DNA from: Aplysia californica
Taxonomy: Eukaryota
NCBI RefSeq assembly: GCF_000002075.1
Contig: NW_004797696.1
Coordinates: forward strand, 235,668-299,667
Direction: 5' to 3'
Length of the DNA: 64,000 bases
The notes beneath the pieces were generated by a model. It worked only from the letters and a program-made list of their open reading frames with translations, was not told where the DNA came from and did no database searches. Below, piece by piece: positions 5,901-41,848 of this stretch. Within the stretch, counting starts at the first letter, position 1. Every line of letters starts with the position of its first letter. The translations under genes and the position numbers were made by a program.

Positions 5901-8900
5901 TGGATTAAGTCAACTTGACATTTCTAGTTTTAAAAGTTGAATTTTTTTTAAAATGTAATATACACATTTCTTCCATTTTGTTCCCAACATGCCAGCATTG
6001 AATCGGACACAATGAGATTCTGAATGACGGAAGTTCATCATTTTGTTGTGTGGTGTTTCAGTTTTTTGGGTTTTTTTAAATGTACAATACAAAGATGATG
6101 ACTGACTACATTGCTAAGGAGATTGTTGCCACAATTGTTAACTCAAACTGTTTGTTGCAAGCGTTACCAGTGGTTTCTATGATATCTTACCAGTGATTAT
6201 GTTTCAGCTTGTTGCATTGTTTTTTATGTTGTTTTCTCCTCCCTTTATTTCTATACTCATTCTAGCAGATGTTTTTATTAATTTTTTTTCCCCCTAATAT
6301 TTTTCATGTATGTGAACATGTACACAGGTTGGGACAGCACATATAATATTGACTTTGTCCGGTGACCTTCAGTAACATTTCCCTTCCTCCCTCTTCTCTC
6401 CCCCCCCTCAACCACTCGGTCCCCATGCTTTACTACATCAAGCCTCCCCACTGCCACACAATGAAGCAGCTCTTTTCCAAAATGCTAAAAGATCCAACAT
6501 TACCATCTTTTGTTAACCTTTTGTGTCCTCGGAAGATACATCACTGCTGGGACTAGGTTCTTGTCTATTCTAAACTGCATTATTTGAACATTATTGGATA
6601 TATTCTTTTAAGCACAAGATTTTCTCATTCGGAATTGTGTTCAGACTGGTACTGCCATAAACTTAGTTTAATCAAGTCCACCGTGCATTTTGGAGAATGA
6701 GAAAATGTATTCGGAAAGTGTGAATCACTCTGGAGTGAAAGTAGTTTGATTTTAAAGGAGTTCAGCCTTAAGTTGTTTTAATGTCTCAATGCTGCTTTTT
6801 GCATGAAAAAGGCAATGAGGGTCCCAATGCTCTTCAAGATTATTATAATCATGGAATCAGAAGTTGAGAATAGATGTAGTTGATTCAAAATTGGACCTGC
6901 TAGTGTTGAACTAATTCTTCAGACATGTCTCACCATTACTAATAATAGCTTGTCAGGTTGACCCTGAGTGAACGGTTCATATTTTGGAAGAGAGCTCTTC
7001 AGCAAGGGTGTCCCTGATAGGAGTGTTTGGTTCTGTCGACTTGTGCTTGCCCTGTGAAATCCTGGTCTTCCCGTTCTCCATCTGTAGAAGCTGCCTCTCT
7101 CACAGCGTTGGGCTTGGGTCTCTAGTCGTGCGATAATACTACACCACCACCACCCACCTTTCCCCACCCCAAACTCATTTTAGCTTATTGTATGCATCGT
7201 ATAGTGATAGCAGCTGTTGGTTGCTAGGCACTCCGGTGTGGTCTGCTTCATCTTTTTCACGTTACTGTTTCTATTATCATACTCTGTCCCAGCAGCATGT
7301 AGAGGCTATTGTGCCGACTCGTGTCTTGTGGACCGTTAAGAACCCAGTGATAGATAGCTGCTTCATGCCCTCTGGTTTCGTATCAGCTGTGTTACCAAAA
7401 GTCTTGCAACAATCAACATCCTTTAGAGTATCTATGTGTCATCTGTTCCCTTTTCCTAGCAAGTACAGGGTGATTGTTGTCAGTGAACGAGATTCGTAGG
7501 TTTTATCTCCTTGCACTCCTGTCGATGTGCACATATTTGACTGTTTAGTCATCTGAAGTTTACTGGAGGTGCAGGTGTGACCTGCTCTTCCAAGATAGGA
7601 AAACAATTTGAACCATTGTTTTATTTCGCTGTTAAAATCTGAACCTGGTAATTTTATGTTTTGTGGTGGAAGGGTATAACTAGTTCCTTAAGAAGTGATT
7701 TCTTTGGAGAGGTTGCGACCTGTTTAATTGACATTTTAAAGTCAAATCGTTCACTGAACTACTGTTTCATCATTATTCTTTATCTATTACTACAACAGTT
7801 TATTGTGTTTCTGCTTGACAGCATGTTTTAGCTTTCCTTCATGGCTGATCTAGCTACTCTGGTTTGAACTGAACTTTTGAAATCAAAATGAGTTTGTTCC
7901 TCTGTCTCATTCCCTATTTCCTTCTTTCAGTCCTTACCTATCCCACACCCACCCACAGATACCCCCCGTGAGCCTCTAACCTGCCAGTTAGTCCCATACC
8001 GGTGCCCCATCTCTGTTAGTTCCTCTCTACATCCTGCTTTGTCTTTATGGCTTGTGTAGCAGACAGTTTTATCCCTCTGGTGGGTGGTTTGAGGGTGCTG
8101 CTGGTTGGTACTTTTTTTTCTTCTCCTTTTCCCCTGTTGTTTCTGTCGGTCTATCTTGCTATTTTACAGCATCAGTGTCTGTCCAGTGTGGTTTGGATGT
8201 GCTTCTCTTTACTCCGAACTTATCCTTCGGTTAGGAACCAGTTATTCCGTGTGGCTAGTATTTCATCACCTCTTCATCACATGTCAGTTCGCGCAAGATT
8301 CTCTACATTATTTCGTTTTCATTTGTGAATTTTTTATCGCATCCATGGACTTGTTCCCCAGCACATTCCCATATTGTAATGCTACCAGATGTTGCTCGGC
8401 ACGTACACACAGCAGGGATGCGAGTTCATTGTGAATGTTTTTGTTTGTGTGTGTGCGTGGACAAGTTCTCATTTGATTGTCAACCGTTTGCTTTGCCTAT
8501 AACTGTTGTTTGTTTGTGGCGCTCATGCGACTAGTGTGTTGCTTTCAGGTTAGTTGAAACAGTTTGGTTTTAAGTTGTCTCACTGCTGCCTCTGGGTTAC
8601 TTGTTGTAGTTCCTCCTGTGTTTGCCTTGCTAGAGAAGACTGCATTTCTTTTACTTTTTAAAGTGTTTTCTGTAAATTGACAAGCTCTACATGTAGTTTT
8701 TCTGTGCTAAGTTGTGTAAGGTAGTCATTTGTTAAAGTCTCTTTTCAGTGGAAAGACGAGCAGATCAAGTAAATATATGAGGCATTGGGGTTTTATGAAA
8801 TGGAAATATTTATGGGTTTGTTCTGAGAGCCCCATCGTGGGTAAACTCTTCAAAGATTATATCTGACAAGTAGAAAATGTTGTCACGTGAATGTTTCTTT

Positions 8901-23364: not shown

Positions 23365-23827
23365 CTCTCTATATATGAAAAAAAAAGAACTAGATCTAGA
23401 AACTTTCACTCATAAGAAAAAAAATTACAGGATTTAAAAAAAAATATATCATTCTTTAAACTTTTTCAAATGCCAAACTGACATAGGTCTAGCTGGTATG
23501 TCAGGAATGGCAACATTTTCCCAAAAATATCAGGGAGTACAAAATGGGTCGTACCAAAAGGGTTAAAGCAACCCTGACAAAAGCAACAGAGATAATAACG
23601 TGATATAAAAAGCATCCAGGATTCCAAATCTTTATTATAAAAAATACAATCTACATTACGTAGATAAGGACTCGAGATTCTTTTCCACACCAAAATAAAG
23701 TCAAGAAATGTCTACAACTTCATTCTTTTGGCAAAACCGTGGCTAATTACAAAATCAATACAGACAATAATGAACTTTTAAGGCACAGCAAACAACAAAC
23801 GAGGAGTCTGGCCAGAGAAGACAGCAG

Positions 23828-24134
23828 CTCCCTCTCAAAGTGGGATCTCCCTCCTCTCAAACTGGGATCTCCCTCCTCTCAAACTGGGATCTCCCTCCTC
23901 TCAAACTGCGATCTCCCTCCTCTCAAAGTGGGATCTTCCTCTCAAAAGTGGAATCTTCCTCTCAAACTGGGATCTCCATCCTCTCAAGGTGGGATCTCCC
24001 TCCTCTCAAAGTGGGATCTCCCTCCTCTCAAAGTGGGATCTGCCTCCTCTCAAAGTGGGATCTCCCTCCTCTCAAAGTGGGATATTCCTCTCAAACTGGG
24101 ATCTCCCTCCTCTCAAAGTGGGATCTCCCTCTCA
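23828..24134. repeat. 22-bp minisatellite (GGGATCTCCCTCCTCTCAAA[G/C]T), about 14 units
   Basis: Direct tandem units, some shortened; overlaps the GALNT-like stop codon. Confidence 0.95.
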
Positions 24135-24326
24135 GAGCAGCACAACACCAGGCTCCAGGTAATCGTTCTCAGCATTTCTGGCGGGCTCCTCCCGCGAAAT
24201 CTCCCAAGCCTGGCTGGCCTGTTGTTTGATGCACTCGGTGATGAGGAGTCCCTTGTTACCATGGATACCGTCCAAACACAGGTTCGTGTCCTGGTGAACG
24301 ATCTTCTCATTATGTCTGTACCAGAT
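24132..24326 (-). CDS. GALNT-like exon 15, ricin-B gamma repeat and stop
   Basis: IWYRHNEKIVHQDTNLCLDGIHGNKGLLITECIKQQASQAWEISREEPARNAENDYLEPGVVLL*. Confidence 0.9.
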   Translation of the reverse strand: MWYRHNEKIVHQDTNLCLDGIHGNKGLLITECIKQQASQAWEISREEPARNAENDYLEPGVVLL

Positions 24327-27225
24327 CTGAGAGACAAAAGTCAGAAAATATGGTGAGTGAAGTTGGTGAAATGTATCCTGCTAGGTGCTGACATTTCACA
24401 AGAGAACTTTTCACATCAATTAATTAAACCTTTCAGTGCGGAGGTGTTTCCACTTACATTTGTACTGACAAGACAAAATGTCCATTCAAGAGAGATTGAA
24501 ATAAAGATAAAATACATTTCTCTTTAATAAGAGTGAGCAACTGCACAAGCGGCAAATACATCTTCTAGAACGTCCTCTATAAACAAGCAAAAAAAAGATC
24601 ACAAGAGAGGATACATGTATACACAACTGTGAAAAGGTTAAGGTACACCACAGCAGTAGCCAAAAGCCAGAAAAAGTTGATTTTGGTATCCAAAACCGGT
24701 TTTTCGAATTTGGACTATTTTAGTAGAGCAACATCTGCTTTATTGATTTGAAATATTTCAAAGTGTCTAAAACATCTATAAAGTGCTCACATATGCCGCC
24801 ATGTTTTTTAACATTGTGTTGAAATAGACCAGTATGAACTCAATTTTCTTTTCAGTTTTCTCAAAACTATGATTTTCTTAGGGGGGTGGGTCACCTATGC
24901 AGAGATATGTCTAAAAGTACATGTCACAGCTCAATCCCACTTTGCTTGACTGTTTCTAGATAATATGTTTGCAACGCACTAAAAGATTATTGTGATATTG
25001 TAATAAGTTTTCTGACAGTGTAAAAAAGATTGACAGTATCACCCTGATTTGTGATTAATTTTTAGTCAGAGTATCGTATATGACACTAAAAGGGCAGTTA
25101 CTAGAAAAGTATGAGACTTAGGAAAGTAAATCTTTACAAAGTTGCAGGTTGAATATACAGAAACACTGTGTGAAAATATCAAGGCTGTATCCATTCAATC
25201 TTTTTCAGAATCCCTGCATAGAATTTGGGTGGTGTCGGTGGCTTAGTGGTTAGGCAGGCGGACTCATAATAATCATGAGATTGCGGGTTCGGGGGTTCGA
25301 GCATCAGCACTTTACACGAATTTCCCACTTGGCTCGGTCCTTTTGGAGACGGACGTTAAACTTGGAGGCCCCGCCTCTTAAATAACCTAATAGTGTTGAT
25401 AGGGGCGTTAAACCTAAACCATTTCATTCTTTAAAAAATAGAATTCAAGCGAATTTTGGTCTGCCGAACCCTTTGCATCTAAAACAATTTGAAAAATTGA
25501 CAGTGAAATCATATACGGAAAGTGTGTTTGTTTCTAGACCCATACTGGTTATTGGGAATCCCAGTAAACTCAATTTAGAGCCCAAACAAAAATTTTCACT
25601 TCAGCTGTACCTAGTGTCTCTTAAATGTGTAAATTCCCCATCAGTATGCTAGTCTCTGAAGTATGCTAGTCTCTGAACATATTTTTTAGTTCTACTCCCC
25701 AGATCTGAGATGTGTGAGGGGTGGACCCTATCAAGAATGCCTACTCTATCCCAAAGAGACAGCCAAAGTGTCCTGGAAACAGGTCTGGATGAGGAGTGTT
25801 GGGAGTTTACTTTTAGTCAGCATCTATATGTAGTGCATTTCAACTTTGCGAATGCTCAAAATACAACTAATACATTTTATTAATCGTCTCAAAGAACTTG
25901 CAACACAATTAGGTCATATGCGTGCCAAAGATTAGAGGTATTACAAAGAATTGTTGTATATTGAATGAGCCAGTATGTACCAAATTAAAAGCTGATTTAA
26001 ATGTTATTGTCTTAATTCACTGAGAAGTGCCGAGAGCAACCAGGAAGTGGGCGCGATAGAAGCGATCTTTATTATTATTATTATCAATATTATTCTTTTT
26101 TTTTATTACTATTAAATATGGAGAGATATTTCAGCAAAAAATGGACCAACACTACACATCCATGCTGTCGGGCTCTGATGGGCTATCTCCCGAGAAGATT
26201 CGTACAAAAGAGGCTAAAAACTGCCTAATTAAACTATCAAAGACAACTTCTATATAAATTTCACCTAAGCGTTTCATGCATTTCCATTTGCTGAATTTTG
26301 ACACCATTTATTGAGATGAAGTACGGTATTTCGATCCTGCATTGCATCAACCTAAAAAAAATCAGGTTTCAGAAAATTGCGTTCAGAGTTGGCCCATTTG
26401 TGGCCGGCGCCATCTACATGTAGATATATATATATATATTCATCGTTTGTGGTATACCCACGGAGAAAAACGCAACATTACCTGGTTCTCAGCATCCTTG
26501 CAAAACTGCACCTGCACAAACCCCTGCATGCTGTGCATGTCCGAGGTGAGGCACATCCCACTGGACACGATGACCCCACGCTTACGCCACGACCACTCCT
26601 GCGATAAATAAAACAATATGCCATTGTTTCGCTGTAGTTTTTTAAAGTTTTTGTAAGAGTTTTACGGCACTTGCAACACAATAAGATCATATAAATGCCG
26701 AAGATTAGAGGTGTTACAAGAGAGTAACAAACACAAAAAAGGAGGAGAGATCAGGATGATAGATGTTTGATAGGAAAGAAGGAGCAAACCACACCAGAGC
26801 ACCCGCCAGCCACCCACTTTCGCTGTAGGAAAATTACTTATGCACACAGAAATGCTGCACGAACGATGCAAGCAATTCAGAAAACGTTTTTTACACAAAC
26901 ACCTCTTCCTAGGTGGTTATGGATTGGACACACACACTCAGAAAGTCAGACCACAACGAGACAAGACAAAGCCTAAAATGGGACTCCCAGGGGAGGAGAA
27001 AGAGAGGAAAGCCAAAATCCACCGGGGAGAGAGACATCATAACATGACCTCAGACATCATCACGTTACAAAGAGCATAGAGTTTGCTGTTGAGCTGGGAT
27101 ATGCGCCATACAAAAGCTGTTTGTGATTATATTATCATGAGTATTATGATTATCATTATATATAATTACTATTATTAACATTATACCATCATCATCATTA
27201 TTATTATAATTATTATTGTTGTCAA

Positions 27226-27267
<42 letters not shown>

Positions 27268-27387
27268 TATTAATATTATCATAATTATCATTACTATTAT
27301 GTTTATGAATATTATGAAATTTATTATTATTATTATTATCATAATTATCATTACCATTACGTTTATGAATATTATGAAAATTATTAC

Positions 27388-27424
<37 letters not shown>

Positions 27425-27635
27425 ATTATTATTATCAGCAACAGACAAGCACAAACTGGCCGCTACCTGTGAGTCCTTGCCGGGTTCACACCGCCTCAGC
27501 TTGGCCACCAGAGGGAGCTGACCAGGGTCAAGGTCGACACAGTTCTCTCCCTGCTTCAGACTGCCGTAAGCAACCTCGTCGGTTATCAGTGGTCTGGAGA
27601 AAAAGAATCAGACTTGGGGCCGGGGAGAGTTTTGT

Positions 27636-27668
<33 letters not shown>

Positions 27669-30600
27669 ACACGCGCGTGTGTGTGTGCATGTGTGTGTGC
27701 ATGTGTGTGTGTATGATATGGCAAAGCATACCACAGAGCTCTGTGTGATTGCAAATAAACCAAACTGCATTAACATTATACAGGTGAGAATTATCATTTT
27801 CCCAATCACATAAAGGGACTGCCCAGCCATGCTGGAAGTTAAGTCGTTTTCCAGTCAAGTACCAACACCCAAAAAGATACTGTTTTTTCCTATTCAGGCC
27901 GGGATCCATCTAAGTATAGAAATGAAAAGAATACCTAAAATCATAACAAATCTCTGAAGTAAATTGGAATGTCAATTTCACTGCAAAAACACAAACTGAA
28001 TCTACAAAAATGGCCAGTCTACAATCAAAAGAAATTTCCCCGGAGAAAAGCACCACACAAACCAATACAACGAAGATCAGGCAAAAATGAGATGTCAGAT
28101 GAAAATTAAAGGAGGGGGGGAGGGGAGAAGGATAAGTAGAAAGTACCCATAAGGTTACCTGATTAGTCACAAAACAGCGTAGTGAAACAACAGACAGATG
28201 GTACAAAAACAAGAATAATGCTCGTTGTTGGGAAACAAATCCCCCTCTGGAGATTGAAAATAAAGTTGGGGGAGGGGGGGGGTGTTTTTTTTAAACAACA
28301 ACAACAAAAAAAAGGAATAAAAGCACAACATAATAGCTTACTGTAGCTGCGGGTACACTGATGTAAGGAACCACTTGAAATTTTTACACTTCAATTTTCC
28401 CTTGAGTTTTCGCTGGCTGCTGACACTGAGAAAAACAATACAGGTGAAGCGTTAATAATGTACGGTGACCATAGCAATTTATGTTGCAAAGTAATTCTTT
28501 AAAAAGCACAAATGCTGCATCCACTTCTTTAATGACAATTAATTTTTTAAAATAAAAGTTTCCACTATACCAGCATGGGCAAAGTACAGCCCGCAGGACC
28601 CTGTAAGAAAAGGTCACTTACTTAAAGTATCCATCATAGACAAGCCATCTTGTTTTCTTGCCAATGCATGTACTTCACTCCTAAAGAGTTCCTACCTTTT
28701 TTTTTTTTTTTGCGTAGCTTCTTAACTCATTCGCAACGTATTATTTTCAGCTTGTGGACGATTTTTTTTCGGGAGGGCGAATGAGATGATGACTAGTGCG
28801 CAGTTCACAGGTCTTTGGGGCCACAAATTCAAATAAATATCAACGTGTTATATACCAATATTTTCAGTATGGTTTGTATAATACATCTGTAATGTTTATT
28901 TATGTATTTTTCAACTTTGGTTCCGGTAAGAGGCGATTATGCAATACAATTTTTATTGGATGCGGATCAAATTTGAAAATAAAAAATTAATAATCTTTGG
29001 TGAAACTCAAAAAATATGTTTGCACCTAGTCAAATGATACATCAAAATAACCATAAATGAATATAGAACTGGAAAATATTGAAAAGTTTGCAGTTATTTA
29101 CATACATTCCATAATATTTGTACATTTGGATCATAACATCCGATATTGAAAAAAAAAAAAGTTTTTTATAATCTTGAAAAACGATCTAAAACAGAAAAAA
29201 CCCACTCGTATCTTATATGGAACTATTCAGAATTGCATTTGGAATAAACCTATACATGTCTTGAGTGGTACTTTTTGTGTAATTTCATCAAAAAGTAGTG
29301 ATTTTGGGGAGAAAAAAGTATTTTGACAATTTAGATCTAGACCTAGATCTGGCACTCAAAAATATAGATTTCTCAATAACAGTGCATTGGCAATATGAGT
29401 CTAATCGTATCAATATTATAAAAAAGAGTCCTACACTTCTTTAGTGGGCAAAATAATGATAGACTTTGTTGTGTAAAATAACTAAGACTGGTGTCCGGGC
29501 TATAATTTTGGCATCGCGATAAAACAAAGTCGAATAAACTACAAAATCGCGTTTCAAAACTGAATCTAAACTTCCCGTTTTCAGTTGAAATGCTTGACCC
29601 GGAAGTCAACATTATATTATGACCTTTATTTTAACATGGATATGTGGATTGGAATAGAATCTAAGCTAAAATTGAAGATTGGTTCTCGAGCCGCCGGGGG
29701 CGGCTTAGCATACTGACGGCACTTTAGCCGTGCCCCCCCCTCCCCCCCACGGCTCGGCGTAGCGAATGAGTTAAGTTGAGCAACACCAAAAACTGCCTAA
29801 AGTCAGAAATACCATCTGGTGACCCTTCACCTGCACAGAATCTGCATTGACTGGGGTACAGTTGTACACCTGTTTCAACACAAATAAGTTCTGCACAAAG
29901 GGAAGTAATTTTTGCCATGTTTAACTCTCTTTTTAAGAGTGAGTGTCATCCTGTAGTATAGTTTTGTTATGCCATGTAGCTATATTTGGAGGCTTTTGGC
30001 TATACTGGGACCCAGACAATAAATGGTGACTCACACCTGCAACGACAAATTCAAATTATAAAGCCTTTTCTTCCACCGTTAAGTAGAACAAAAGGAAACC
30101 TAAATTAATTCTACAAAATTTTATTCTTAAATTTTGTGTCAAAAAGTCTCATCCTTCTTCAATATGATCATTTCATTAGATTCTTTGTTGCCAACTTCAT
30201 TTTCCAGCCTTCTTTTCACCGCATTGGCGCCGACCTGAAATAACTCACTCTGATAGTGGCTGCATTCTCGCAGAAGGCCTCACAGCGTAAAAGAACCTCT
30301 TGAATTCTTCCAGCCACACTTCTGCCAATCTCCGAGCACCTCTGTCAAGAGAAATATCAAACTAATCACATACTTTAAAAAATTATAGGCCCAGTAAAAA
30401 GGAAGGCATTATTTTAAAATATTAGTGAAACCTAAATAAAAGAGATCTATGCCTACACGGATCTACAACATTCTGTCTTTAACTATCTGTCTATTTGCTT
30501 CTCATTCATCCTGTATCTACCTACTTCTTTTCCCCTCCATTCATTTCTGCAGTGTACTGTACAGCATATTGGAGTTACTCAAAAATGAGATGGTTGTACA

Positions 30601-33600
30601 CAAGTACATGTATACATCTAGGAGTACATCCAACAACATTAATAACACTGGGTGACTCAAATCACAAATCCAAAACGTTTGAAAAAAAATGAATAAGCAA
30701 CAACCGTTTTTTTTTTTGGGGGGGGGGGTGTTTAATACGAGAAAAAAATCTAGTGTACGGTAATCAAGCTTACCGGAGGTAATTGTTGAAGATATAAAGG
30801 CGGGAACCCAGTTCTCTCCCATGTGCTTGGATGAGACCGACCCGACTGCAAGGAATTATCTCCACTTGGCCTCCACACATCCACGCACGCATCGTCAATT
30901 CTGTCAAGTGAAAGAAGCAAACATCATTACAAAGATTCTCAGCTCAGAGAAGTGAAAGTAGCAAACAACCTCACAAGGAATTGTAACTCACAGAAGTGAA
31001 AACAGTAACATAAATCTACACAAAACAACTAAATATAGATCTACATCAAAGACAACTCACTGTGAGAAACTAAAAAAGATTTCATGAGACCGAAACTACT
31101 GGTCAGAGCAAAAGCTTCAAAAAAGGTTTTCAAAGCGAAATCAATTTCTTTTCACAAACTTAGGAAAATCACAGCACCAGAGTCCACCCCCCCCCCCCCC
31201 AAAAGATGAATGCTTATAAATGCACACAAAAGTAGCATATCAACGGGACAATTCTACAGACTATTAATTTGGTTAGACAAGGCTGTGTTCGTACTTGTCC
31301 ACTGTTCTGGTTTTGCTAGCTTTCTGCACACTTAACAAACTATAATTCACTCTCAAAACCAAAATGTTTGCACTGCAAGATGATTACCGTACAGACACAG
31401 AATAATATTATCCCCGTTTAACTGTATGTATACCAAAAAAGTAGAACTTAACCATAAAGATGCATCAATTTTTTAAAATAAGTGTATCATGTCAACAAAA
31501 GAAAGAATATCACAATATAAGTGGTCCTACGGAAAAAGAAGAGACGTGAAATAAAATGTCTTTCGTACCTAAATCTTCAATGTCTTTGGACATAGGGTTG
31601 AGGTCATATTTCCCTAACCAGCTGAAAAAGTCCTTCCTGACAGCCAAGACACTTCCACACAATGTCGGAGACCTGAACAAGACAAAAAGATCACAAAAAT
31701 ATTGTCGGAAATATTTCACCAAAAGGGGAAAAAAGAAGCAGATAATGCATGTTAAAAGTAATGATTGCTCTACTCGCCTTTCCATTCAGCTTAGTCGGAG
31801 TCCAGTTATAACAATAAATGTCAAAAATCAGAGAAAACGTTTCGGTTTTTTCCTAAAATACAGAAGACTTACTCTTTTACTTCTATATCCCTATTATGAA
31901 ACCCTTCATTTTGAGGCATCATGGTGTAACAAGGTGCTTGTCAAAATAATGCAGTCAAAGAAACTGGCATGTTGCTATCTGTACGGTGACTTTTTTAAAA
32001 ATTTCATTTTTTGGCTTCAACACCTTTTATGTTCATTTAAAAAGATATATTTCTGTGTGGACTTTAATGAAAAACTTTAATCAAAGGCACAAAAATTGAA
32101 AATTTTCTGTGTCCAAGGACACTCAAGCACTGAAAGTCACCAAACTTTGGCGACCATTTTCTCACTAATTTTACCTGACATCAGGTGACTCCCACCTCCT
32201 TCAATTGCAAATATTTCAACTCCTTTAATTTAAGACTGATGGGGGGTTTCTTTTAACAAAAGCAAGACAAATGAACAAACTTTAAGATAATACCATTAAC
32301 TCTATATACCTAAAAATTGAGGAGTGCCTGATTCCAACGTGTCATGACACATTTGAAGTTAAATTTTAAGTTTAAAGGCTATTTACAGAGACAAAAAAGA
32401 CAGACAGAAAGAAAAAGCAAAGTGAAAGAAAAGAAGAAGTGTCCTCAAGCTTTCCACATCCATAAAGATCCATTTGCAAGTACAATAAAAGTCAGTAATT
32501 AGTTCTACAACACCTGTTTTGTTATTCACAAAATACCCAGGCTTGTCTCTACACTAAGGGTACAACAAATAGAACATTTTCAAAAGTTGTACTTGTAAAA
32601 ACTTACTGATGAAAGAAAGGAAAAAGGACCCAGGGCCTTACCTGATAGGAGCAGTGACATCTTCATTGGTGTGAAAAGCTAATGGAACGTCCTCCCAGCG
32701 ATGCTCCAGAGTCCAATCAAAACCTGAAAATAGTGAAAGTAATAGGTAATGGAATTCTACTTCAATAATGTACTTACAAAGATGATTGTCTACACCATCA
32801 CTGGAAACAATTAATCTTTACAGCACTATTTTTAACTCGTCATCTCTGGCAAGCCGCTCCCAGAGGCTAACAGTCAGAACCGCTGGCAGCAGCTCAGGCA
32901 TATTCCTTTCCGACGAATTCAACCTAATTACTTTTCGGCAATTGCTGAAAACAGGTCTCTTTTACCAGGAATTCGTTCATTAGATGAAAATTTATCAAAA
33001 TAGGTTCGCTTGTTTTGATTTAATGACCAATAAAGTGACGCTCTTAGGTGGAACCTGCTGCTAAATTGAAGTTCAAAGAGTGGGGTAGGTGCCTGTAACC
33101 TGCACCCTAAAATCCAATTTACAAGATGTGGTGATTTTGTTATGCTGGAATGTGATAACATTGGCAGCATAAGTAGCCAAGGTTTGACCAGATCTTTTCC
33201 TTTTAAGACAGCTGATGCTCAATCACAGGGGACTGGCTGAGACTTTTCCCTCCTCAGCCAGGAGACTCTGACACTCTTGAAGGAAGGTGGCTCTTGACAA
33301 GAATGTGTGAACTGAGCTCCTGTACTCAGCGTAGTGTATTTTAAGCCCACGCAGGTGTCATGAGGAGATCAACTACAGAGGAAGGGGATACATGCACACT
33401 ATAATTACAGGCTCTGTGTTCACGTTGCTTTTTAAACGCCAAAAACATTTTGTGTCAGACAATTTATAGCAACAAAGTTTCCAGAAAGAGGAAAAGATTA
33501 CTCTTAAAGGGGGTTATTTATATATTTATATGAAAATTCCATTACACCTGTTTAGACTGCTGTTAGGTAGAGGTTACTCTTATTTGGATTGCTGTTAAGT

Positions 33601-36600
33601 GAACACCATTGTATCATAAAATATTTATAAGACAAGGTGGGTAGAAATTACTAAAAAGCACAAATACCTCCCCTAAAAATTCCAGGCAAAGACCTGTAAC
33701 CAAAAGTCACATGATCGATGGAATCCAAGATGGGGGACACAAGACTCTTTGGACTCTGTAAATAGAACATAAAAAGAGATTATATAATCTGTGTGAGAGT
33801 CAAAGAAAATCAAAACTTCATGAATTTACCAAAACAGGGCACTGAGGTCTGGAGGTCAGAATAAAAGCAGACATAATTACCTTACAATGACACTGTCTTA
33901 AGAAAAGTTTTATGGTATTTGAAAAACAAGACAGTCACATTTAGAGGTGTTACTATAGAGTATCATTCACAAAAAAAGAAGGAGGAGAGATAAGAACGAT
34001 GGGAAAGAAGGAGAAAACCACCCACAATGACATTGTGAAGAAACTCAAGCTTCATTGGTCACTCCTTTGAAATAAATTTCTACATTCACCTCTGAAAAAA
34101 ATAGAGCATACTGAGGAATCTTAAAAACCTAAAAAAAAACACCAAAAAAACCTTCATAAACATGACACAAATTAGATGTAAGAGTCTAACATTAAGTTTG
34201 ACATGCCATCCCTTTTCTTTCTTACTCTTTTTCTTTAAGGGAAGACACTATTGAGACAACAGTTATTGCGATATCCTGGAGATAAAAGGTGTTGAGTTTT
34301 AAGTTTTAGTGAGAGTTTTACGACACTTGTAACACATTAAAGTCATATAAGAGTCGAAGATTGGTTACAAGTGTTACAAGAAGTAACAAATACAAAAAAG
34401 GAGGGGGAATAAGGACGATAGGTGTTTGATAGGAAAGACGGAGCAAACCACACCAGAACACCCGCCAACCATCATTGAAAGGGGTTGAATAAGATATTCT
34501 GATAGACTCTTTAAACCTTCAATCCGGTTCGGTAGCAATACAGGGTCAGATGGGGGTCTCAAGCCTATAAAATTATGAGGTCCAGTATACCAAATCTACC
34601 ACAAGTTCAAGAGATTTGGCTTCGAAATGATCTGTTAGTCCAGTAGATCATTGAAACATCCAAGAAAAAAATTATTAACAGGAAGATATAAATTATGAAT
34701 CACCTGGAGGATGCGAAGCAAAAGGGGAGACAACCAATTGACGTTGACCTCAGCCAAGCTATCGACAAAGACAATGACGTCCCCTGATGCTGCTTGCATG
34801 CCCTTGACCCTGGCAGCTCCCCGTCCTGAGGAACAAATCAGGGCAACCTTGAGGTGGACATAGTACTCACTTTTATTATAATAATAATAATAAATAATAA
34901 TGATACGAGGGCCGCCAAGTAAACTATATTAAGTCATATTTTTCAAATTTTTACAGGAGAGACAAAAAACGGATTTTCTTGAAGCGTTTTTGGTGGATAA
35001 ACTTCATTTTCAAAAGGGAGCCTAATGTCATGCACTTGTAGGCTCCCTTATGAAAATGAAGTTTATCCACCCAAACCGCTTTTTTCAAATCTGCTTTTTG
35101 TCTCTCCCGTAAAAATTTGAAAAATATGACTTACCATAGTTTACTTGGCACCGCTCGTAAGTAATAATAATAATAATAATAATAACAACAATAATAATAA
35201 TAATGAGGATGATGACAATAATATTAAATATTATTATACTAATCACCAGACCACTAGCACCATATTACTTTACTTTTATTAGATTCAGGTTGTTTATCCA
35301 TGACATTATAGTTATACAGTTCATTTGTTGAATAAGGTCACATTTCACTAAGAAGATGATGGTGCCAGTTGTCTATTTAGGCTATCACACCCGTAATTGT
35401 GAGACTGCAGATTTGGGGGTTCGAAAGGCATTTAACTCAAATGTCCTATTTGTTTTACCCCTTTCGGAGATAAACCTTCACCTCTAAGGTTATTTTTGAT
35501 AGGGGCATTAAATCCGCATTATTTCACATTTTCTATGCAGCTAATCGCGACGATGGTAAAACTGACACAGATGTCGAAGGAGCAGCCCGCTTACAAGAAC
35601 ACCTTCAACTATTCACAGCAATGAAGAGTGGATCGGGACCTATTAAAAAAGTTGTCACAAGGAAAATAATCTTCAGTCAATGTAGGACTATGCACTTGTG
35701 AACGCTGTTATTCTTAATAACTTAAAAAATTGAGCAAATCCATATCCATATATACACACCTTATTCACACAAAAATTATTCCATCAGACAAAAGAATTCT
35801 TCAGTCTTCAAATGCAAAGTATTTCTTTTTGTATTGGAAAAGGAGATGGAGGGAGACCCAGAATGAACTAAAAATCATGCTTCCTGTGCTTGATATACCT
35901 TCAATGGAAAAATACATAAATGAACACATCAAATATACATCTACCTCTTAAGGCAAATTCACCAGGACTGACTTTTAACAAACTTTCAAGCTACAGGTTT
36001 AAGGCACAAACCTGTGGGTTGTTCATTCCTAATAACTTGAACACCAGGCAGCTGAGAGAGTAGGTGCCCATCTTCAGCTGTGAAAAACACAAAATTAAGT
36101 TCAATCAGTCAGTGCGCTCGGTTTTGCTCTGTAATTGATTTTTTTCTTAATTTTGATCAATTCTGCCTAAAGTGGCCCCTTTTCTCCTTGACAACGGGTG
36201 GCTGTCTCAGGCAATTTCAACTGTATTGTGTGTACTGAAGCACTCTATTAATTTCTTTTAAAATTCTCAACCACCTCTGTGTAGGAAGTTCCTAATCATC
36301 AGTTCACTTGTTTTGCCTCTATGGCTGTCAGTCCGTATTTAGCAGTATAGCTATTTGACAATATAAGAGAGTACATATATCAGTAGGTTTCATTGTCTGT
36401 ACATATGAATGCTCATCCAAATAGAAATGAATGACAATAAATAGAGCTTTGGTTGAGATGGGAAAATATAATGGGAAAAGGAAACAGCAAACCTGAACCA
36501 ACCACGGACAAATATACTGCCTAAAATATTCAACATACTTTTACATCATACCATTGTTTTTTATTCAGTTTTCAACTGATCAAAATGTAGCATTTCCAAA

Positions 36601-39600
36601 GTAAAGTACTATTTTAGCATTCTTTGAAAATCACAGAACAAGAACATTTTTTCACAGGACTGCCCATGAAAGCTGCATTTGTGTAAATATGAAACTAAAG
36701 CCTACCAAATAAAAGACACTTACCGTTTCTGGAACCATCATCAACCAAAATTATCTCACGAAGGGTGACAGGGCTTGACTTTGTCAGAATACTGCAAACA
36801 GCAAAGGCATTCATCAATGTTTAGACTTTCATATCAAAAAGCAACATCTTAGATCCTCCATGATATTAATCACAATTCTTTTTCCATAACTGACTTCATG
36901 CATCTGACAATACCACATTCGACATATTCACAAAAAATTGCCTCAACTGTTTATGAACAGAACTGAGTTACAATTTAATTTTTAAAAATTATTACTCAAA
37001 ATGGTAACTAAACAAAGCTAAGCAAGGTCTAAAGAGTTTAAGAGACTGGTTGGTGGGTGATCTGGTGCGGTTTACTCCTTTTTTTATTATCAAACATCTA
37101 TTGTCCTTATATCTCTCCTTTTTTATGTTCGTAACTCTCTTGTAATACCTTTAATCTTCACTTGTTGGGTTCCTGTGCAATAAAACATTTACTAAAACTA
37201 AACAAAATTTAACCACCGCAGCATACTATACCTGACTATGTTCCTCAAAAGGACAGACCGGTCTTCATCCCTGAACGTAACAATAATACTTGGTGAAGGC
37301 AGCTCATGCTTTATGGATGAAGTTACAACACCACAACTGAAATAATCAAAGGATATATGATGCATCCTTTGAAAAACCACAAAAATTCAATCTTTAGATA
37401 TTCATCGAACACTTCATTTCATTATCAATAAAGATAGAAGAGTACCATTGTGATTGATGATTAAAATAATTCGTTATCTTTTTATTTGAGCAGTAAAAAT
37501 TATTATATTTCTTCAAAAAGCTCTCTCTCTCTCAGAAGCGAAAAAATACAACGTACATATGACAAGTAACCATACTACAAGAATTTGATACCAACAAGGT
37601 AGGCCTTATTTCTATTTTCGGTTATGAAAAATATTCATTCATTTCAACAATCAATATGACAGACTCTATCAAACTCCATAAAAAAGCTTTAAAAAAATTT
37701 TTTTTTAACCAAACTGCTATGACATAACGTAAAAAAAAAGCTTTGTTTTTCTCAAATATTCGAGTACCCATTACATAAGTCGCTGTTATTCGAATGCATA
37801 GAAATATGCCAATAGTTCTATTTCCAAAACATCTTTTCCTCAGTGACAATAAGCACAAACAGAGCCTATTAAGATACATCTAATCATGATTCCAGCTGAA
37901 TATTTTTCAACAATATATATAGTGTATCTTTGTGAAGACCCATCGCATCACAAAGAAATGGGACATTATATCTATACATTTATGACATGGGTATCCATGG
38001 TAACATAAGAGAAAAAATTGGGAAGAACACATTTTTTGTGACCTCAACAGCTATAGCAAAGTTTACAGTAGTAGGAAGTAGTTAGGGAAACACTACCTTG
38101 CATGTCTTAGGTCAGGAAGACTTCTATTCGGCTTGACTGCGCGGCTGTTGACAATATTATAACCATACCGTCGAGACAGATCTTGCTTTGCAGTATCAGG
38201 TGCAGATTCAACATAGGACAGGTGTTGGAGGAGTGACACATCAAAGGATGACTGAAGAAAACAAAAGCATCAATCAAAATTAACCTAGTGCTGGTCTCAT
38301 AACTTTCTGCAATGTTGAAAGAAAGGCTTCATTTTTTTGGGAAGGACTCAAATTTTGAATTTTGCCCAGACTGCCGCCCGATGGTTAAGGGACCTTATTC
38401 TCTTTTCATTTTTAGAATTCATGACAAGGGATCTTAACACTTGGTCACTTGGCACAATAATGCGAAAGTGAAAATTATCCGTTCCGGTCACCTGGCGTAG
38501 TCTCCCGTGAAGTCCATTGCAGTCACTCTCCTGGCTGGGTGACCAAATGGGTTGTACTGCTGGCTGTGTGACTGCAAAATTTATTAAATGTGCCGAACTT
38601 TCACAGGATACCTCTAAAATATTACGTCCTTCACATATGATATTATATAGCAGCTTTTCCCCATCCATGAAGAAATATCTGGCAGGCCCTGACTCAGTCC
38701 AATGAAATTCGGTTAGCGGTGTGCACTGACTTCGGGGTATTAGACCAACCCCTAACCACATGCTTCCCCCCCCCCCCCCCCCGCCACACACACACAGAAT
38801 GTACATGGTGTTTTTTGAATTATCAACCTAACCCTTCTCAATTCTATTCAATTCTTCTAGAAGGCAGACACTACTAGATCTAGATCTAGATCTAGTCTTT
38901 GTTTACTCTCTCACCCCCCAAAAAAATTACATTGGCTGCGTGAAGGTAGATTATAACAATTATTTCTGAGCATGAAAATGGAAATGTAGGCCTACACTTT
39001 TATATAATTTATAAAACGAAGTGACTATTTCTCCGAACGTTCTGGAAAATAAACCTGAACTCTATTTCTCCGAACGGTTTCCGATCTCGAGATTGTTTGG
39101 GTTATTTGCGAGATTTAGGCACCATCCTTTCATTCTGCCATTCTGCAAGGACTGGGAAGAAGCATTTTTTGCATCAAATTCAATTTCTAGAGCGAGAGAT
39201 TTTTAAATGTCTGAATATTCAGATACTAGTTGTGGTTGGGGCAACATTCCTGGGCTATACCAAAGATAGTACAAGACAAGATGGGTCACTTCTCTCTTTG
39301 AGCCAATTAAAAAAGAGTCCTCAAAATTTGGTGGCGCCCTCTTCACAAAAGCGCACTCTTTGCGAACAGAGTTACCCTACTTGAGTTTTAAAAAATCAAA
39401 GTGAAACTAGCAAGTTTTGGGATAAATTTCGGAAGAACGCTTTTTAAAATGGTTACGCTGACAAAAACCTCTTCCGGAGGAAAAGGAGATGGTTTTCTTC
39501 GTTTAATTTGACTTTAGAATGAAGGGCGAGAGGACATTAAAATTTAAAAAAACCTAAAACTCCGCACTGAACGTACCCGAACTGCTGATGAACAGCAGTC

Positions 39601-40393
39601 GATCTGCGCACGCAAGGAGGTGCTATTCCTATTCTTCTTCTGGAAAAACGAAAGAGAGCTTCAAAACAGACTGCAGCGCCATCTGAAGCAACTTTAGAGC
39701 ATACTTCCTGCGGACACTTTTTAGGCTGAGTGGCCCATCTTGTCTTGTACTATCTTTGGCTATACTTCATTTGAAAATACCTTCAAAGGCTACAGCGAGA
39801 AAACAAGACAGCTCGACCTTGGCAGTAACCTATTTTGCATTTAGTCAACCAGCAAAAACTAAAATCCTTATGTAAAAAAAAATCCCTCCACGCCCCCCCC
39901 CCCAAACCCGTTCACACCTTACACACACACAGACACACACACACACATGCACACTCACACACGCACACTCACACACACACACACAAACACACAGGCCACT
40001 CCATTCGATTATCATCAACAAATCTCGAGAACTGAAACCATTCGGAGAAATTTAGAGCTCAAGTTTATTTTCCCAAACGTTCGGAGAAATAGAGCCGGCC
40101 TTCATAAAATGTCTCATAAGACCTTCTTTCTTTCATCATTGGCTTCCTTTCAATTTATTTGCATTAGAATCTGAAGAATATTTAGACTGACCCAGGGCAA
40201 AAATGTCTTTTCCATTTCCACTGACAATGAATAGGGCCTAGATCTAGGTGACACGAAGACAACTTTTTGAACTTACTGGCAGGTCCCGGTGTGTCATGCT
40301 CCATATTATCTGCCAGAAAATCAGAGCAATGCTGCACAATAGCAGGAACACCAGGAGCACCACGCACTTGTTTCTTCTCATTGGTTTCATCAT
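24132..40393 (-). CDS. Polypeptide N-acetylgalactosaminyltransferase-like protein (GT27, GALNT2-like), 15 coding exons, 549 aa, catalytic motifs degenerate
   Basis: Exons 40393-40277, 38251-38097, 37336-37232, 36791-36724, 36077-36012, 34825-34704, 33755-33668, 32723-32642, 31672-31569, 30900-30774, 30341-30249, 28425-28342, 27593-27467, 26598-26482, 24326-24132. All GT/AG and phase-consistent, 1650 nt total, no internal stop. Type II TM + GT-A domain (EIILVDDGS, RGGFDW, CGGQVEIIPCSRVG, LAEVW, CKNFKWFL..VYP) + ricin-B lectin (three QxW). Confidence 0.93.
25226..25437 (+). mobile_element. tRNA-derived SINE with target-site duplication
   Basis: A box TGGCTTAGTGG and B-box-like GGTTCGAG; tail GTGTTGATAGGGGCGTTAAACC; flanked by ATAGAATT direct repeats. 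Confidence 0.75.
26482..26598 (-). CDS. GALNT-like exon 14, ricin-B beta repeat
   Basis: EWSWRKRGVIVSSGMCLTSDMHSMQGFVQVQFCKDAENQ. Confidence 0.9.
26635..26816 (-). mobile_element. Family A short retroposon copy
   Basis: Reverse complement of the 807-986 element. Confidence 0.85.
27125..27435. repeat. (ATT)n microsatellite
   Basis: Long degenerate trinucleotide tract. Confidence 0.95.
27467..27593 (-). CDS. GALNT-like exon 13, ricin-B alpha repeat
   Basis: PLITDEVAYGSLKQGENCVDLDPGQLPLVAKLRRCEPGKDSQ. Confidence 0.9.
28342..28425 (-). CDS. GALNT-like exon 12
   Basis: VSSQRKLKGKLKCKNFKWFLTSVYPQL(Q). Confidence 0.93.
28726..29770. mobile_element. piggyBac-like non-autonomous element
   Basis: TTAA on both flanks; TIR CTCATTCGC(A/T)ACG. 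Confidence 0.75.
30249..30341 (-). CDS. GALNT-like exon 11
   Basis: GARRLAEVWLEEFKRFFYAVRPSARMQPLS(D). Confidence 0.93.
30774..30900 (-). CDS. GALNT-like exon 10 (VGH position reads VGL)
   Basis: LTMRAWMCGGQVEIIPCSRVGLIQAHGRELGSRLYIFNNYL(R). Confidence 0.93.
31569..31672 (-). CDS. GALNT-like exon 9 (Gal/GalNAc-T motif degenerate)
   Basis: SPTLCGSVLAVRKDFFSWLGKYDLNPMSKDIEDL(E) versus canonical tP.mAGGLFai....F..lG.YD.gMdiWGGENLE. Confidence 0.92.
32642..32723 (-). CDS. GALNT-like exon 8
   Basis: (G)FDWTLEHRWEDVPLAFHTNEDVTAPI(R). Confidence 0.92.
33668..33755 (-). CDS. GALNT-like exon 7
   Basis: SPKSLVSPILDSIDHVTFGYRSLPGIFRG (canonical vVsPiID.I...tF.Y). Confidence 0.92.
34704..34825 (-). 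CDS. GALNT-like exon 6 (DxH position reads DSL)
   Basis: RGAARVKGMQAASGDVIVFVDSLAEVNVNWLSPLLLRILQ. Confidence 0.93.
34906..35157. mobile_element. Fold-back mariner-like MITE inside a (TAA)n microsatellite
   Basis: TA|CGAG...CTCG|TA; the two halves are ~120-bp imperfect inverted repeats. Confidence 0.8.
36012..36077 (-). CDS. GALNT-like exon 5
   Basis: EDGHLLSQLPGVQVIRNEQPT (GALNT2-type EDG.LL....V.V.RN). Confidence 0.9.
36724..36791 (-). CDS. GALNT-like exon 4
   Basis: ILTKSSPVTLREIILVDDGSRN; tgcag/gtaagt junctions. Confidence 0.93.
37232..37336 (-). CDS. GALNT-like exon 3
   Basis: CGVVTSSIKHELPSPSIIVTFRDEDRSVLLRNIV (canonical LP.tSviItFHNEarS.LLRTv). Confidence 0.92.
38097..38251 (-). 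CDS. GALNT-like exon 2 (stem)
   Basis: SSFDVSLLQHLSYVE...YGYNIVNSRAVKPNRSLPDLRHA; matches the GALNT R.lPD.R stem motif; ttcag/gtagt junctions. Confidence 0.9.
39025..40092. mobile_element. TIR element containing a nested 500-bp TIR element (39260-39759)
   Basis: Outer ~70-bp inverted repeats CTATTTCTCCGAACG.../...CGTTCGGAGAAATAG; inner 31-bp TIR CCAAAGATAGTACAAGACAAGATGGG(T/C)CACT flanked by CTATA. Confidence 0.72.
40277..40393 (-). CDS. GALNT-like exon 1: cytoplasmic tail and type II transmembrane anchor
   Basis: MMKPMRRNKCVVLLVFLLLCSIALIFWQIIWSMTHRDLP, then gtaagt donor, phase 0. Confidence 0.85.
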
Positions 40394-41560
40394 AAATTGA
40401 AAGTGAGCTTACAATGGCATTTAATTTTATGCTATGTTTTGTCCAACAAAATAGCAACATCGTATCGATAGGTAGCTTTATTTTAGAAGGCAACCGCTGT
40501 TATGTCGTGGCCTTGTTCTTCTGAGTCTAGAGCTTCTATTGATGACGAGGATTACATCGGCCAGCGAATAGTGCTATCGTGGATAGAACTATGTCAAAAT
40601 CTACACGTTTCACTTATCACAGTGCGGGTGAGTGGTGTCCGAAGTAGCAACACATTTCCGGGCGCTCACTCTTATACAGCACTGGTGTGCAGCCACAAGG
40701 CCACTGTTCGCCTGCACCTCAGTTGCCAACACAGCACATCAATTTTTTGGCACCGCGTGTTCGGCTTGCTCTTTGAATGACGCCACGCCCCCATTTCCTA
40801 CATGCTTGCCTCCCTTATTGTTTACATACACAACATCAATGCTTGTCAAGGAAACGTAGCTGGGTAAGCTTGGAAGCGTATTGTGGAGAAAGATCAAAGG
40901 CGCAGTTCCCCTTAGTAACCAAAAGGAAACAATCGTAATCTAGAGAGACGAGAATATGTCATCTAGATCTACTTTGACGATTGGAAACATTAAAATATTT
41001 CAAAGGAGAAAAGAAGACCTCTATAGTATAGATCTAAGCTATTAAAGTAAAAATAGGCTAATAAGAATCTGCTGACTGCTGATGACTGATGAACGAATTG
41101 CACAGCCTTGGTTTTTGATTATTCTGATTTATCATACACAGGCAATGACCTTGGTATTTTCGATGGTTCTATTGTAGGCCAGGGTTTGTTTTGTTTTGTT
41201 TTTAAATGAAACTGACAGGTTTGCAGAAACACACCCAGTTCCCAAATCTCGTCATTAATTTTTTTCGAAACTGCAGCAGACCGTTGCGAAACCTACCTTT
41301 GTGCCAACCGAGTCCCAAGTAGCCTAAGCCTACGCTTTCATCACGAGTCGCTTTTTTGGAACTGACGTGACCGGTTCACCACTGTAGGTCGTGACCTGCC
41401 CTTTGAACTAGGCCTAGAAAGTAGAAAGTTATTGACTAAGCAAGCGTGGAAGTAATAAGGTGCCAGTGTGCGAGTGTCCTGCTGCAAACCAACCGGCTTT
41501 CGCATTGAAGCATTTTGCTTGCCTTTGCAATAATAGAACATCTTCTACTTGATCTTCAAA
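40394..41560. promoter_or_regulatory. Putative bidirectional promoter and 5' UTRs between the GALNT-like and methyltransferase genes
   Basis: Divergent ATGs ~1.17 kb apart; locally richer in CpG; GC-box GCCACGCCCC at 40782-40791; TGACGT half-CRE at 41363-41368. Confidence 0.55.
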
Positions 41561-41848
41561 ATGGCTCAGATTTTTGGAATTGATCATAAATATGTTGCTG
41601 TATCCACGGCGGCTTTGTCGATAGGAGTTGCAGCGTATTCCATGTACAAGTATAGGTCGATGGTAGCAGCAGTCAAGAATGTTGTACCCGGCTCTGAAGT
41701 CTACGAGTCTGAAAAGCTTCTGGGCGAATACTTAGTGTTTCATTTTGGTTCTCCAGAACAACTAATTCCTTATCCTTTCGGGCCCAAAGACGCTTTGGAT
41801 TTCCCCAAAAGATGTGCTGAGCTTTGTCTTAAACACTACAAACCACAG
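41561..41848 (+). CDS. OvoA-type methyltransferase exon 1 (N-terminal hydrophobic anchor + YE..L..YL.FH motif)
   Basis: caaaATGG Kozak-like context; MAQIFGIDHKYVAVSTAALSIGVAAYSMYKYR...HYKPQ|gtaaag. Confidence 0.9.

Follow-up and report, generated by a model that had tools for sequence, protein, structure and literature searches.

What holds a glycosyltransferase gene together once the residues that made its product an enzyme have gone? The question is raised by a gene of Aplysia californica that lies within a stretch of 64,000 nucleotides (nt) of contig NW_004797696.1 (referred to here, at its full length, as the window) and encodes a relative of the polypeptide N-acetylgalactosaminyltransferases (GalNAc-transferases or GalNAc-Ts; family GT27), which initiate the mucin-type glycosylation of proteins. 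An original prediction, made from the letters of the window, held that selection keeps the fold of this protein but not the chemistry that depends on Mn2+ and on uridine diphosphate N-acetylgalactosamine (UDP-GalNAc). This view is supported by the sharing of the loss among related species, by low ratios of nonsynonymous to synonymous substitution (dN/dS), by correct splicing and by the predicted fold, and we propose that the gene encodes a GT27 pseudoenzyme that has long been conserved with its lectin domain in place and is probably a non-catalytic Golgi binding protein that tunes O-glycosylation.

Gene structure and catalytic-site residues

The gene occupies window positions 40393–24132 on the minus strand, and its 15 exons form a coding sequence of 1650 nt with the uninterrupted frame of 549 amino acids that had been predicted. 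All of the introns are GT..AG with pyrimidine-rich acceptors, the TGA stop codon is at 24134–24132, and the joined model is identical to XP_005104633.1 (P0001, 549 amino acids), no difference being found when the two printed sequences were read side by side. P0001 was retrieved with exon 10 as the query (window:30776-30898:-) and was used for the later protein searches; its RefSeq name is 'polypeptide N-acetylgalactosaminyltransferase 2', and the gene is present in single copy in the Aplysia assembly.

The protein has the two domains expected of GT27, a GT-A domain (Glycos_transf_2, PF00535, residues 107–262, E 5e-21) and a beta-trefoil (Ricin_B_lectin, PF00652, residues 417–526, E 3.5e-13), both recognized by Pfam, while Glyco_transf_7C (PF02709), which covers the Gal/GalNAc-T motif, gives no Pfam match at E<=0.01. 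The topology is that of a type II protein: exon 1 (40277–40393) begins with the start codon at 40393, as the orthologues do, and encodes MMKPMRRNK followed by a hydrophobic signal-anchor at residues 10–31 (40366–40301), which coincides with an AlphaFold helix at residues 7–34. The cysteines C92, C311, C320, C389, C422, C439, C462, C479, C502 and C517 are invariant among 78 family members, and six of them are lectin cysteines; both the membrane anchor and the structural cysteines are thus kept, as predicted.

Catalytic residues, numbered here after human GalNAc-T2 unless Aplysia numbering is stated, were placed by alignment to human GalNAc-T2 chains (Asp224/Ser225/His226, His359, Phe361/Arg362, Trp331–Asn335 and Phe144–Glu147). 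In GalNAc-T2, Mn is held by Asp224, His226 and His359, Trp331 is the key catalytic residue, and the loop 362–373 switches the enzyme on (PMC4432651). There are several departures from this arrangement in the Aplysia gene. First, the place of DxH in exon 6 (34704–34825) is taken by DSL (GAT AGC TTG, 34763–34755); the same exon encodes a new arginine, Arg172 in Aplysia numbering (34823–34821, Leu204 in T2), and a retained one, Arg176 (T2 Arg208). Second, WGGEN reads KDIED (31587–31573) in exon 9 (31569–31672), with Trp331 lost and Asn335 replaced by Asp. Third, a Leu codon (CTC, 30835–30833) at the place of His359 ends the motif CSRVGL (30850–30833) in exon 10 (30774–30900), and the flexible loop that follows (30832–30797) is rewritten, starting with I-Q-A as compared with V-F-R in T2. 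Fourth, FHNE is replaced by FRDE (37275–37264) in exon 3 (37232–37336), so that His145 becomes Arg and Asn146 becomes Asp. Finally, T2 residues Arg201, Arg362, His365 and Tyr367 correspond to Pro169, Ala328, Arg331 and Leu333 in Aplysia. Other positions persist, including the Asp176 equivalent within VDDGS (36745–36731) of exon 4 (36724–36791) and the Trp282 equivalent within GFDWTLEHRW of exon 8 (32642–32723). Direct reading of the codons, together with the T2 alignment, confirms all of the substitutions originally listed (DSL, CSRVGL, Q-A for F-R, KDIED and FRDE), and the marks of an active polypeptide GalNAc-transferase (EC 2.4.1.41), namely DxH, His359, WGGEN with Trp331, and the flexible loop with its UDP contacts, are absent.

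The codons are borne out by sequencing reads. Four runs were compared over window positions 30200–36199: X13 and X17 (transcript contigs of low depth, from different studies), X11 (DNA) and X21 (poly(A) RNA). A 768-nt contig of X13 lies on exons 6, 7, 9, 10 and 11, and a 725-nt contig of X17 lies on exons 8, 9, 10 and 11. X13 record 9 (which includes exon 7, 33668–33755) and X17 records 13, 16 and 17 (record 13 on exon 8; record 17 spanning 36011–36075, on exon 5 at 36012–36077) break no more than 2 bases from the modeled exon borders and show no difference from the window within exons 6, 9 and 10; the contigs thus represent spliced transcripts, in which DSL, KDIED and CSRVGL are encoded. The independent DNA run X11 spans both key codons; the listed differences of its piece over DSL are all intronic (34664–34674), and its piece over the Leu codon (30818–31041) has a single difference, at a position not among the rows listed. 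The only exon variant among the rows listed over these 6 kb is a T>C change at 30257 in exon 11 (30249–30341, encoding the highly conserved linker helix AEVWLEEFKRFFYAVRPSARMQP), which is present in X13, X17 and X11 (three studies) and is synonymous (CCA to CCG, Pro). The Leu codons are thus carried by spliced contigs of two studies and by the X11 DNA, and the gene is transcribed and correctly spliced in Aplysia.

Ancestry, selection and genomic setting of the loss

Searches with P0001 recover full-length relatives at 49–62% identity from Arion, Bradybaena, Candidula, Lymnaea, Plakobranchus, two species of Elysia, Biomphalaria, Bulinus and Physella; next are Patella (44%) and oysters (39–41%), beyond which similarity falls off abruptly to that of ordinary GalNAc-Ts. 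The losses are found in 11 heterobranch species belonging to four orders, with the frame intact in all of them. The His226 place is occupied by Leu in 11/11 heterobranchs and by His in 12/12 canonical molluscs and in 13/13 other proteins of the GALNT14/16 type (T14/16-type), so that the His-to-Leu change, whose sharing among orthologues the original prediction had proposed as a check, is common to the whole clade. The His359 place is Leu in five of the heterobranchs, Val in five and Ile in one. Trp331, Gly332 and Gly333 are absent from all 11, Asn335 is Asp in 11/11, and Arg201, His145, Asn146, Arg362, His365 and Tyr367 are replaced, the four positions Arg201, Arg362, His365 and Tyr367 throughout the clade. 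The equivalents of Thr143, Asp176 (11/11), Arg208, Asp224 (10/11), Gly308, Glu334 (9/11) and Trp282 are kept, invariant or nearly so, and three replacements are fixed clade-wide: Leu194, Arg172 (the T2 Leu204 place) and Asp301 (Aplysia numbering). The canonical set (Patella, Lottia, Haliotis, seven caenogastropods, one chiton and one scallop) keeps DSH (ESH in Nucella), WGG(E/D)N or a near form, and CS(R/H)VGH. On these alignments the loss evidently predates the last common ancestor of Aplysia, the sacoglossans, the freshwater pulmonates (Hygrophila) and the land snails (Stylommatophora).

The gene had been described as GALNT2-like, and T2 is indeed its best match in both sequence and structure; it is not, however, the T2 orthologue. 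A maximum-likelihood (ML) tree of 45 proteins (LG+C20+F+G4), in which true T2 sequences were not included, supports a T14/16-type clade (40 rows) at 100/99, the molluscs at 99/94, the gastropods at 98/95 and the 11 heterobranchs at 100/100; it tracks the species tree, and the heterobranch stem has a length of 0.89 substitutions per site. Among vertebrate proteins, the Patella orthologue is closest to GALNT14 and GALNT16 rather than to GALNT2. A count of 15 exons is likewise found in Patella, Lottia and Babylonia, where the internal exons match in size (155, 105, 68, 66, 122, 88, about 80, 104, 127, 93, 84, 127 and 117), and the heterobranchs share these with a few departures (Biomphalaria and Bulinus differ in some exons, and the Bulinus model has 16); the 155-nt exon 2 (38097–38251), which encodes the short stem and the start of the catalytic domain, has this size in Patella, Lottia, Babylonia, Bradybaena and Candidula. 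The neighboring gene is also shared. It is a gene of the Methyltransf_11/12 type, placed head to head, and a divergent intergenic region of 1.2 kb separates it from the ATG at 40393 (40394–41572; defined by tblastx and the Pfam families of the neighbors), and the same divergent pair is present in Lottia, where the first exon of the methyltransferase (L008:1-136, minus strand) matches window positions ~41573–41659 on the plus strand (tblastx, 59% over 29 amino acids, E 2.6e-8). The tree, the shared exon sizes and the Lottia neighbor therefore make orthology with the canonical gastropod enzymes well supported.

A separate T2 locus is present on another Aplysia contig (G000:C282:~247400-251400; L012:3430-3561 and 7284-7427, minus strand). 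Its exons are about 90% identical to human T2, at 38/43 and 34/41 positions (84 and 63 bits), as compared with 26 bits for the equivalent exon of the window gene, and DSH and CSRVGHVFRKQHPY (the latter also reported as CSRVGH) are intact. The Biomphalaria T2 orthologue (Bge-ppGalNAcT) is active and Mn-dependent and is 61–65% identical to human T2 (PMC6994419). Given the separate intact T2 in Aplysia and the affinity to GALNT14/16, the window gene is evidently a member of the GALNT14/16-type lineage of GalNAc-transferase subfamily Ib rather than a GALNT2 orthologue, and its RefSeq name is a loose one. The idea that heterobranchs are without any canonical subfamily Ib enzyme, suggested by a search in which none ranked above the pseudoenzyme clade, was rejected on the strength of the active Biomphalaria orthologue (PMC6994419) and the intact Aplysia T2 gene; the pseudoenzyme clade stands in only for the T14/16-type member.

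Active-site loss within this lineage is not confined to heterobranchs. In the oyster proteins P0025, P0026 and P0027 (Ostrea, Saccostrea and Crassostrea virginica) DxH is replaced by SGV, TAP and SEA, and WGGEN and His359 are also lost. In the tree they group with the canonical scallop protein as its sister (98/94), at the end of a stem of 1.14 that is theirs alone, and the oyster loss is therefore independent of that in heterobranchs. Partial erosion is also seen in caenogastropod orthologues (P0136, P0137 and P0139 of neogastropods, P0134 of Pomacea) in which the metal ligands are kept: in the three neogastropods Leu or Val stands in for Arg362, in Pomacea Trp331 has become Leu, and in Nucella the motifs read ESH and WGADN. 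Constraint on the T14/16-type active site may be weaker in gastropods as a whole.

How strongly is the altered protein constrained? Estimates of dS by the Nei–Gojobori method (NG86) are undefined for deep pairs, and dN/dS was taken from close pairs and from an ML codon fit. Among heterobranchs the pairwise dN/dS is 0.14 for Bradybaena–Candidula (dS 0.51), 0.18 for the two Elysia species (dS 0.63) and 0.105 for Biomphalaria–Bulinus, a pair with dS near saturation; the canonical pairs give 0.11 for Babylonia and lgn139, a neogastropod transcript (dS 0.93), and 0.155 for Patella–Lottia (dS 1.10). In the ML fit (one omega, GY+F3X4), seven heterobranch genes give an omega of 0.131 overall, 0.146 in the catalytic domain and 0.076 in the lectin domain, and four canonical genes give 0.105, 0.097 and 0.062, respectively. 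Constraint on the heterobranch catalytic domain is thus relaxed about 1.5-fold relative to the canonical genes and is still strong, and the best conserved parts within the clade are the linker (72% mean identity) and the trefoil (66%). All of the heterobranch values (0.105–0.18 pairwise, 0.131 by ML) fall well below 1, as expected under the original prediction, and purifying selection as estimated from these codons is almost as strong as in the catalytically canonical orthologues. Run X17 was considered as a close-species source for dN/dS and was dropped, its contigs being identical to the window but for one synonymous site and hence offering no divergence.

Several features of the genomic setting were noted. 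A 22-bp unit repeated 14 times (87% matches) occupies window positions 23831–24131, starting directly 3′ of the stop codon and therefore in the presumed 3′ untranslated region, and produces repetitive plus-strand open reading frames at 23739–24356. Intronic segments at 32000–32399, 33800–33999 and 34200–34599 are high-copy interspersed repeats; every run reaches depths there of between thousands and hundreds of thousands, and the poly(A) RNA reads fall on both strands, with many chimeric joints. Long ATT/TAA microsatellites in the introns at 27126–27435 and 35162–35204 give rise to spurious poly-Asn and poly-Ile open reading frames on both strands. Elsewhere in the assembly, the best exon match of the Patella protein (G000:C2:1783k; C2:1783000-1794500) was considered as a canonical copy and rejected, being T1/T13-like. 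At G000:C2:1261000-1350000 and G000:C6:221000-247000 several sets of exons resembling those of GalNAc-Ts are clustered, with members on both strands, a pattern that suggests tandem paralogue arrays. A stop-free frame of 637 amino acids at G000:C895:16340-17470 (minus strand) has a weak likeness (23–29%) to GalNAc-T catalytic domains over ~340 residues and could represent either a retrocopy or a divergent family member without introns. As for the methyltransferase neighbor, methylated hexoses are a notable component of snail O-glycans (PMC6272458), and whether the two are functionally linked is suggested as a question worth asking.

Fold, lectin domain and proposed function

An AlphaFold2 model built from a 78-sequence alignment has a mean predicted local distance difference test score (pLDDT) of 90 and a predicted template-modeling score (pTM) of 0.84; the pLDDT falls to 74 over residues 331–340, which form the rewritten loop. 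In a Foldseek comparison with the PDB, GalNAc-T2 structures rank first (E ~1e-52, TM 0.6–0.68) and the top matches are all GalNAc-Ts (E 1e-52 to 1e-40), so that the predicted fold is that of GalNAc-T2, a comparison the original prediction had put forward as a check; the high root-mean-square deviation of these matches fits a different relative placement of the two domains.

The C-terminal part is encoded by exon 12 (28342–28425; the linker to the lectin domain), exon 13 (27467–27593; alpha repeat, with CVD at 27541–27533), exon 14 (26482–26598; the end of the alpha repeat with QEW, and the beta repeat with CLT) and exon 15 (24132–24326; QIW, the gamma repeat with CLD at 24278–24270, and QAW at 24212–24204). 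The three lectin QxW motifs originally listed as kept (QEW, QIW and QAW) are present, although QxW residues belong to the trefoil core. In the alpha site of the T2 lectin domain GalNAc is held by Asp458, Tyr471, His474 and Asn479 (PMC4432651). The Aplysia alpha repeat keeps only the Asp, the other three being Arg, Glu and Ser; only the Asn is kept in the beta repeat and only the Asp in the gamma repeat, and no repeat has the full set of four. The motifs are kept, as originally stated, but do not show lectin activity, with one of the four T2 tethering residues kept. The alpha-repeat sequence of canonical mollusc orthologues is nearly the same as that of Aplysia; the lectin-domain sequence is thus older than the loss of catalytic residues and has been retained after it. 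The trefoil may bind another ligand, or bind in another geometry.

How would such a protein act? Two of the three Mn2+ ligands are lost (His226 to Leu in 11/11, and His359 to Leu, Val or Ile) along with the gate-keeper Trp331 and the WGGEN motif, and the contacts with UDP-GalNAc and the loop that involve His145, Arg201, Asn335, Arg362, His365 and Tyr367 are lost too. The former metal site appears to be filled by aliphatic residues, Leu194 and Leu325 at the ligand places and Leu333 at the place of Tyr367 (Aplysia numbering for the three Leu residues), and with such residues there Mn-dependent GalNAc transfer should be impossible. Binding would instead be through the linker and the beta-trefoil, the most constrained parts, and through a remnant of the peptide groove (Trp250 and an aromatic residue at 248). 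The bound partners could be protein or glycoprotein substrates or active GalNAc-transferases, with O-glycosylation itself carried out by intact isoenzymes, including the true T2 orthologue.

Some observations weigh against this proposal of a non-catalytic Golgi binding protein. The poly(A) run X21, with 14.8 million reads, has no read on the exons in the region compared, so that expression must be low or confined to certain tissues. Placement in the Golgi is an assumption based on the topology of the family, and inactivity is deduced from residues. The lectin repeats lack most of the GalNAc-tethering residues in the heterobranch clade and in canonical mollusc orthologues alike, and standard sugar binding is not supported. 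The catalytic domain, at an omega of 0.146, is under more constraint than a mere scaffold might need, and the nucleotide-side residues (the equivalents of Thr143, Asp176, Arg208, Asp224 and Glu334) persist, which would leave some nucleotide or sugar binding possible.

The last two observations are also those that speak for a protein that is still an enzyme, a GT-A transferase that has become metal-independent or has changed its donor or acceptor, with Arg172 and other basic residues taking over from Mn2+ in neutralizing the diphosphate. C2GnT-L is an example of a metal-independent GT-A enzyme that works in this way. Omega in the catalytic domain is higher than in canonical orthologues by a factor of only 1.5, and the retained nucleotide-side residues and Gly308, taken with the new Arg172, Leu194 and Asp301, resemble fixed replacement rather than random decay. 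However, the losses are broad (two ligands, Trp331, Gly332/Gly333, Asn335, Arg201, His145, Arg362, His365 and Tyr367), many of the positions vary within the clade, the loop that closes over UDP-GalNAc is rewritten, and Pfam misses the Gal/GalNAc-T motif domain; we consider a surviving transferase distinctly unlikely. Quite improbable, too, is a re-engineered GT27 enzyme or sugar-nucleotide sensor with a metal-free site around Arg172, Asp301, Thr111, Asp144, Arg176, Asp192 and Glu300 (Aplysia numbering), which would use a different donor or acceptor, might be tied to the methylated snail O-glycans and the methyltransferase neighbor, and would have a parallel in oysters.

A non-catalytic protein could also act outside the control of O-glycosylation, either by engaging chaperones in the endoplasmic reticulum (ER) or secretory pathway, as is reported of GALNTL5, or as a shed luminal binder of a lineage-specific ligand. 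GALNTL5, which has no transferase activity, associates with ER chaperones and is required for sperm to function (PMC11655647), and the absence of the standard GalNAc-binding set from the Aplysia trefoil and the apparently low or restricted expression would fit such a role. It is nonetheless unlikely here: unlike GALNTL5, the protein has an entire lectin domain and linker, under stronger constraint than the rest of its sequence, and the near identity of the alpha repeat to that of canonical orthologues suggests that an ancestral substrate- or glycan-directed role has been kept. A pseudogene, whether young or in decay, is hardly credible, and nor is an artefact of assembly or annotation. Loss of catalytic residues is expected of a dying enzyme gene and the X21 result would agree with it, but the frame and all 14 introns are intact, the same losses are present in 11 species with intact frames, omega is 0.13, and spliced transcripts were found in two studies, with the codons confirmed in independent DNA.

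Comparison with known systems

Inactive GT27 members are already known, and the Aplysia gene is already annotated, as an ordinary GALNT2. To our knowledge, only vertebrates have so far yielded inactive members of the GalNAc-T family (GALNTL5 and perhaps T18), and little is understood of how these act; within the collection of papers covered, our literature search found no description of a mollusc GalNAc-T without catalytic residues. What is new here is a lectin domain kept while the metal ligands are erased, the age and breadth of the clade in which this is seen, the canonical orthologues that serve as controls, and the oyster parallel. The RefSeq 'GALNT2' label is misleading for inventories of mollusc glyco-genes, including those of the schistosome vector snails Biomphalaria and Bulinus.

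The vertebrate protein GALNTL5 (GALNT20) is, like the Aplysia protein, a GT27 member, and is inactive yet biologically needed (PMC11655647). The two differ in lineage and in what they have kept: GALNTL5 retains its catalytic domains and has no lectin domain (PMC11655647), an arrangement not found in the Aplysia protein, which is the reverse. The Y subfamily (GALNT8, 9, 17 and 18), described as vertebrate-specific (PMC4291152), likewise departs from the usual Gal/GalNAc-T motif, and its activity is low or disputed. Two fish GALNT8 proteins keep DAH, YGGEN and CSKVAH, which agrees, for these two, with the original statement that the Y subfamily retains DxH; the Aplysia protein is far more degenerate, with both His ligands and the whole of WGGEN gone. 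T18 is proposed to modulate other isoenzymes, in a passage of PMC4291152 that cites Li et al. 2012, and the action through partners or substrates suggested here would resemble that proposal (PMC4291152) and, loosely, the case of GALNTL5 (PMC11655647).

Human GalNAc-T2 belongs to the same subfamily Ib, has the same fold, and is the top match of the Aplysia protein both by sequence (332 bits) and in Foldseek. Identity to T2 is, however, 36%, with the ligands lost, as compared with 61–65% for the active Biomphalaria T2 orthologue (PMC6994419). The closest parallels are GALNT14 and GALNT16 together with the canonical mollusc orthologues, which are like the Aplysia protein in lineage, exon sizes, Lottia neighbor, domain order, cysteines and alpha repeat. 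In contrast to them, it lacks His226, His359, WGGEN with Trp331, Arg201, Arg362, His365 and Tyr367, has the long stem of 0.89, and has its own Leu194, Arg172 and Asp301. The oyster orthologues are of the same Ib lineage and are also without DxH, WGGEN and His359; they differ in the independence of their loss, in having other replacements, and in having no conserved Leu. The canonical sister lineages and this independent oyster replicate provide a comparative system in which to ask what role the non-catalytic parts of a GalNAc-T play by themselves.

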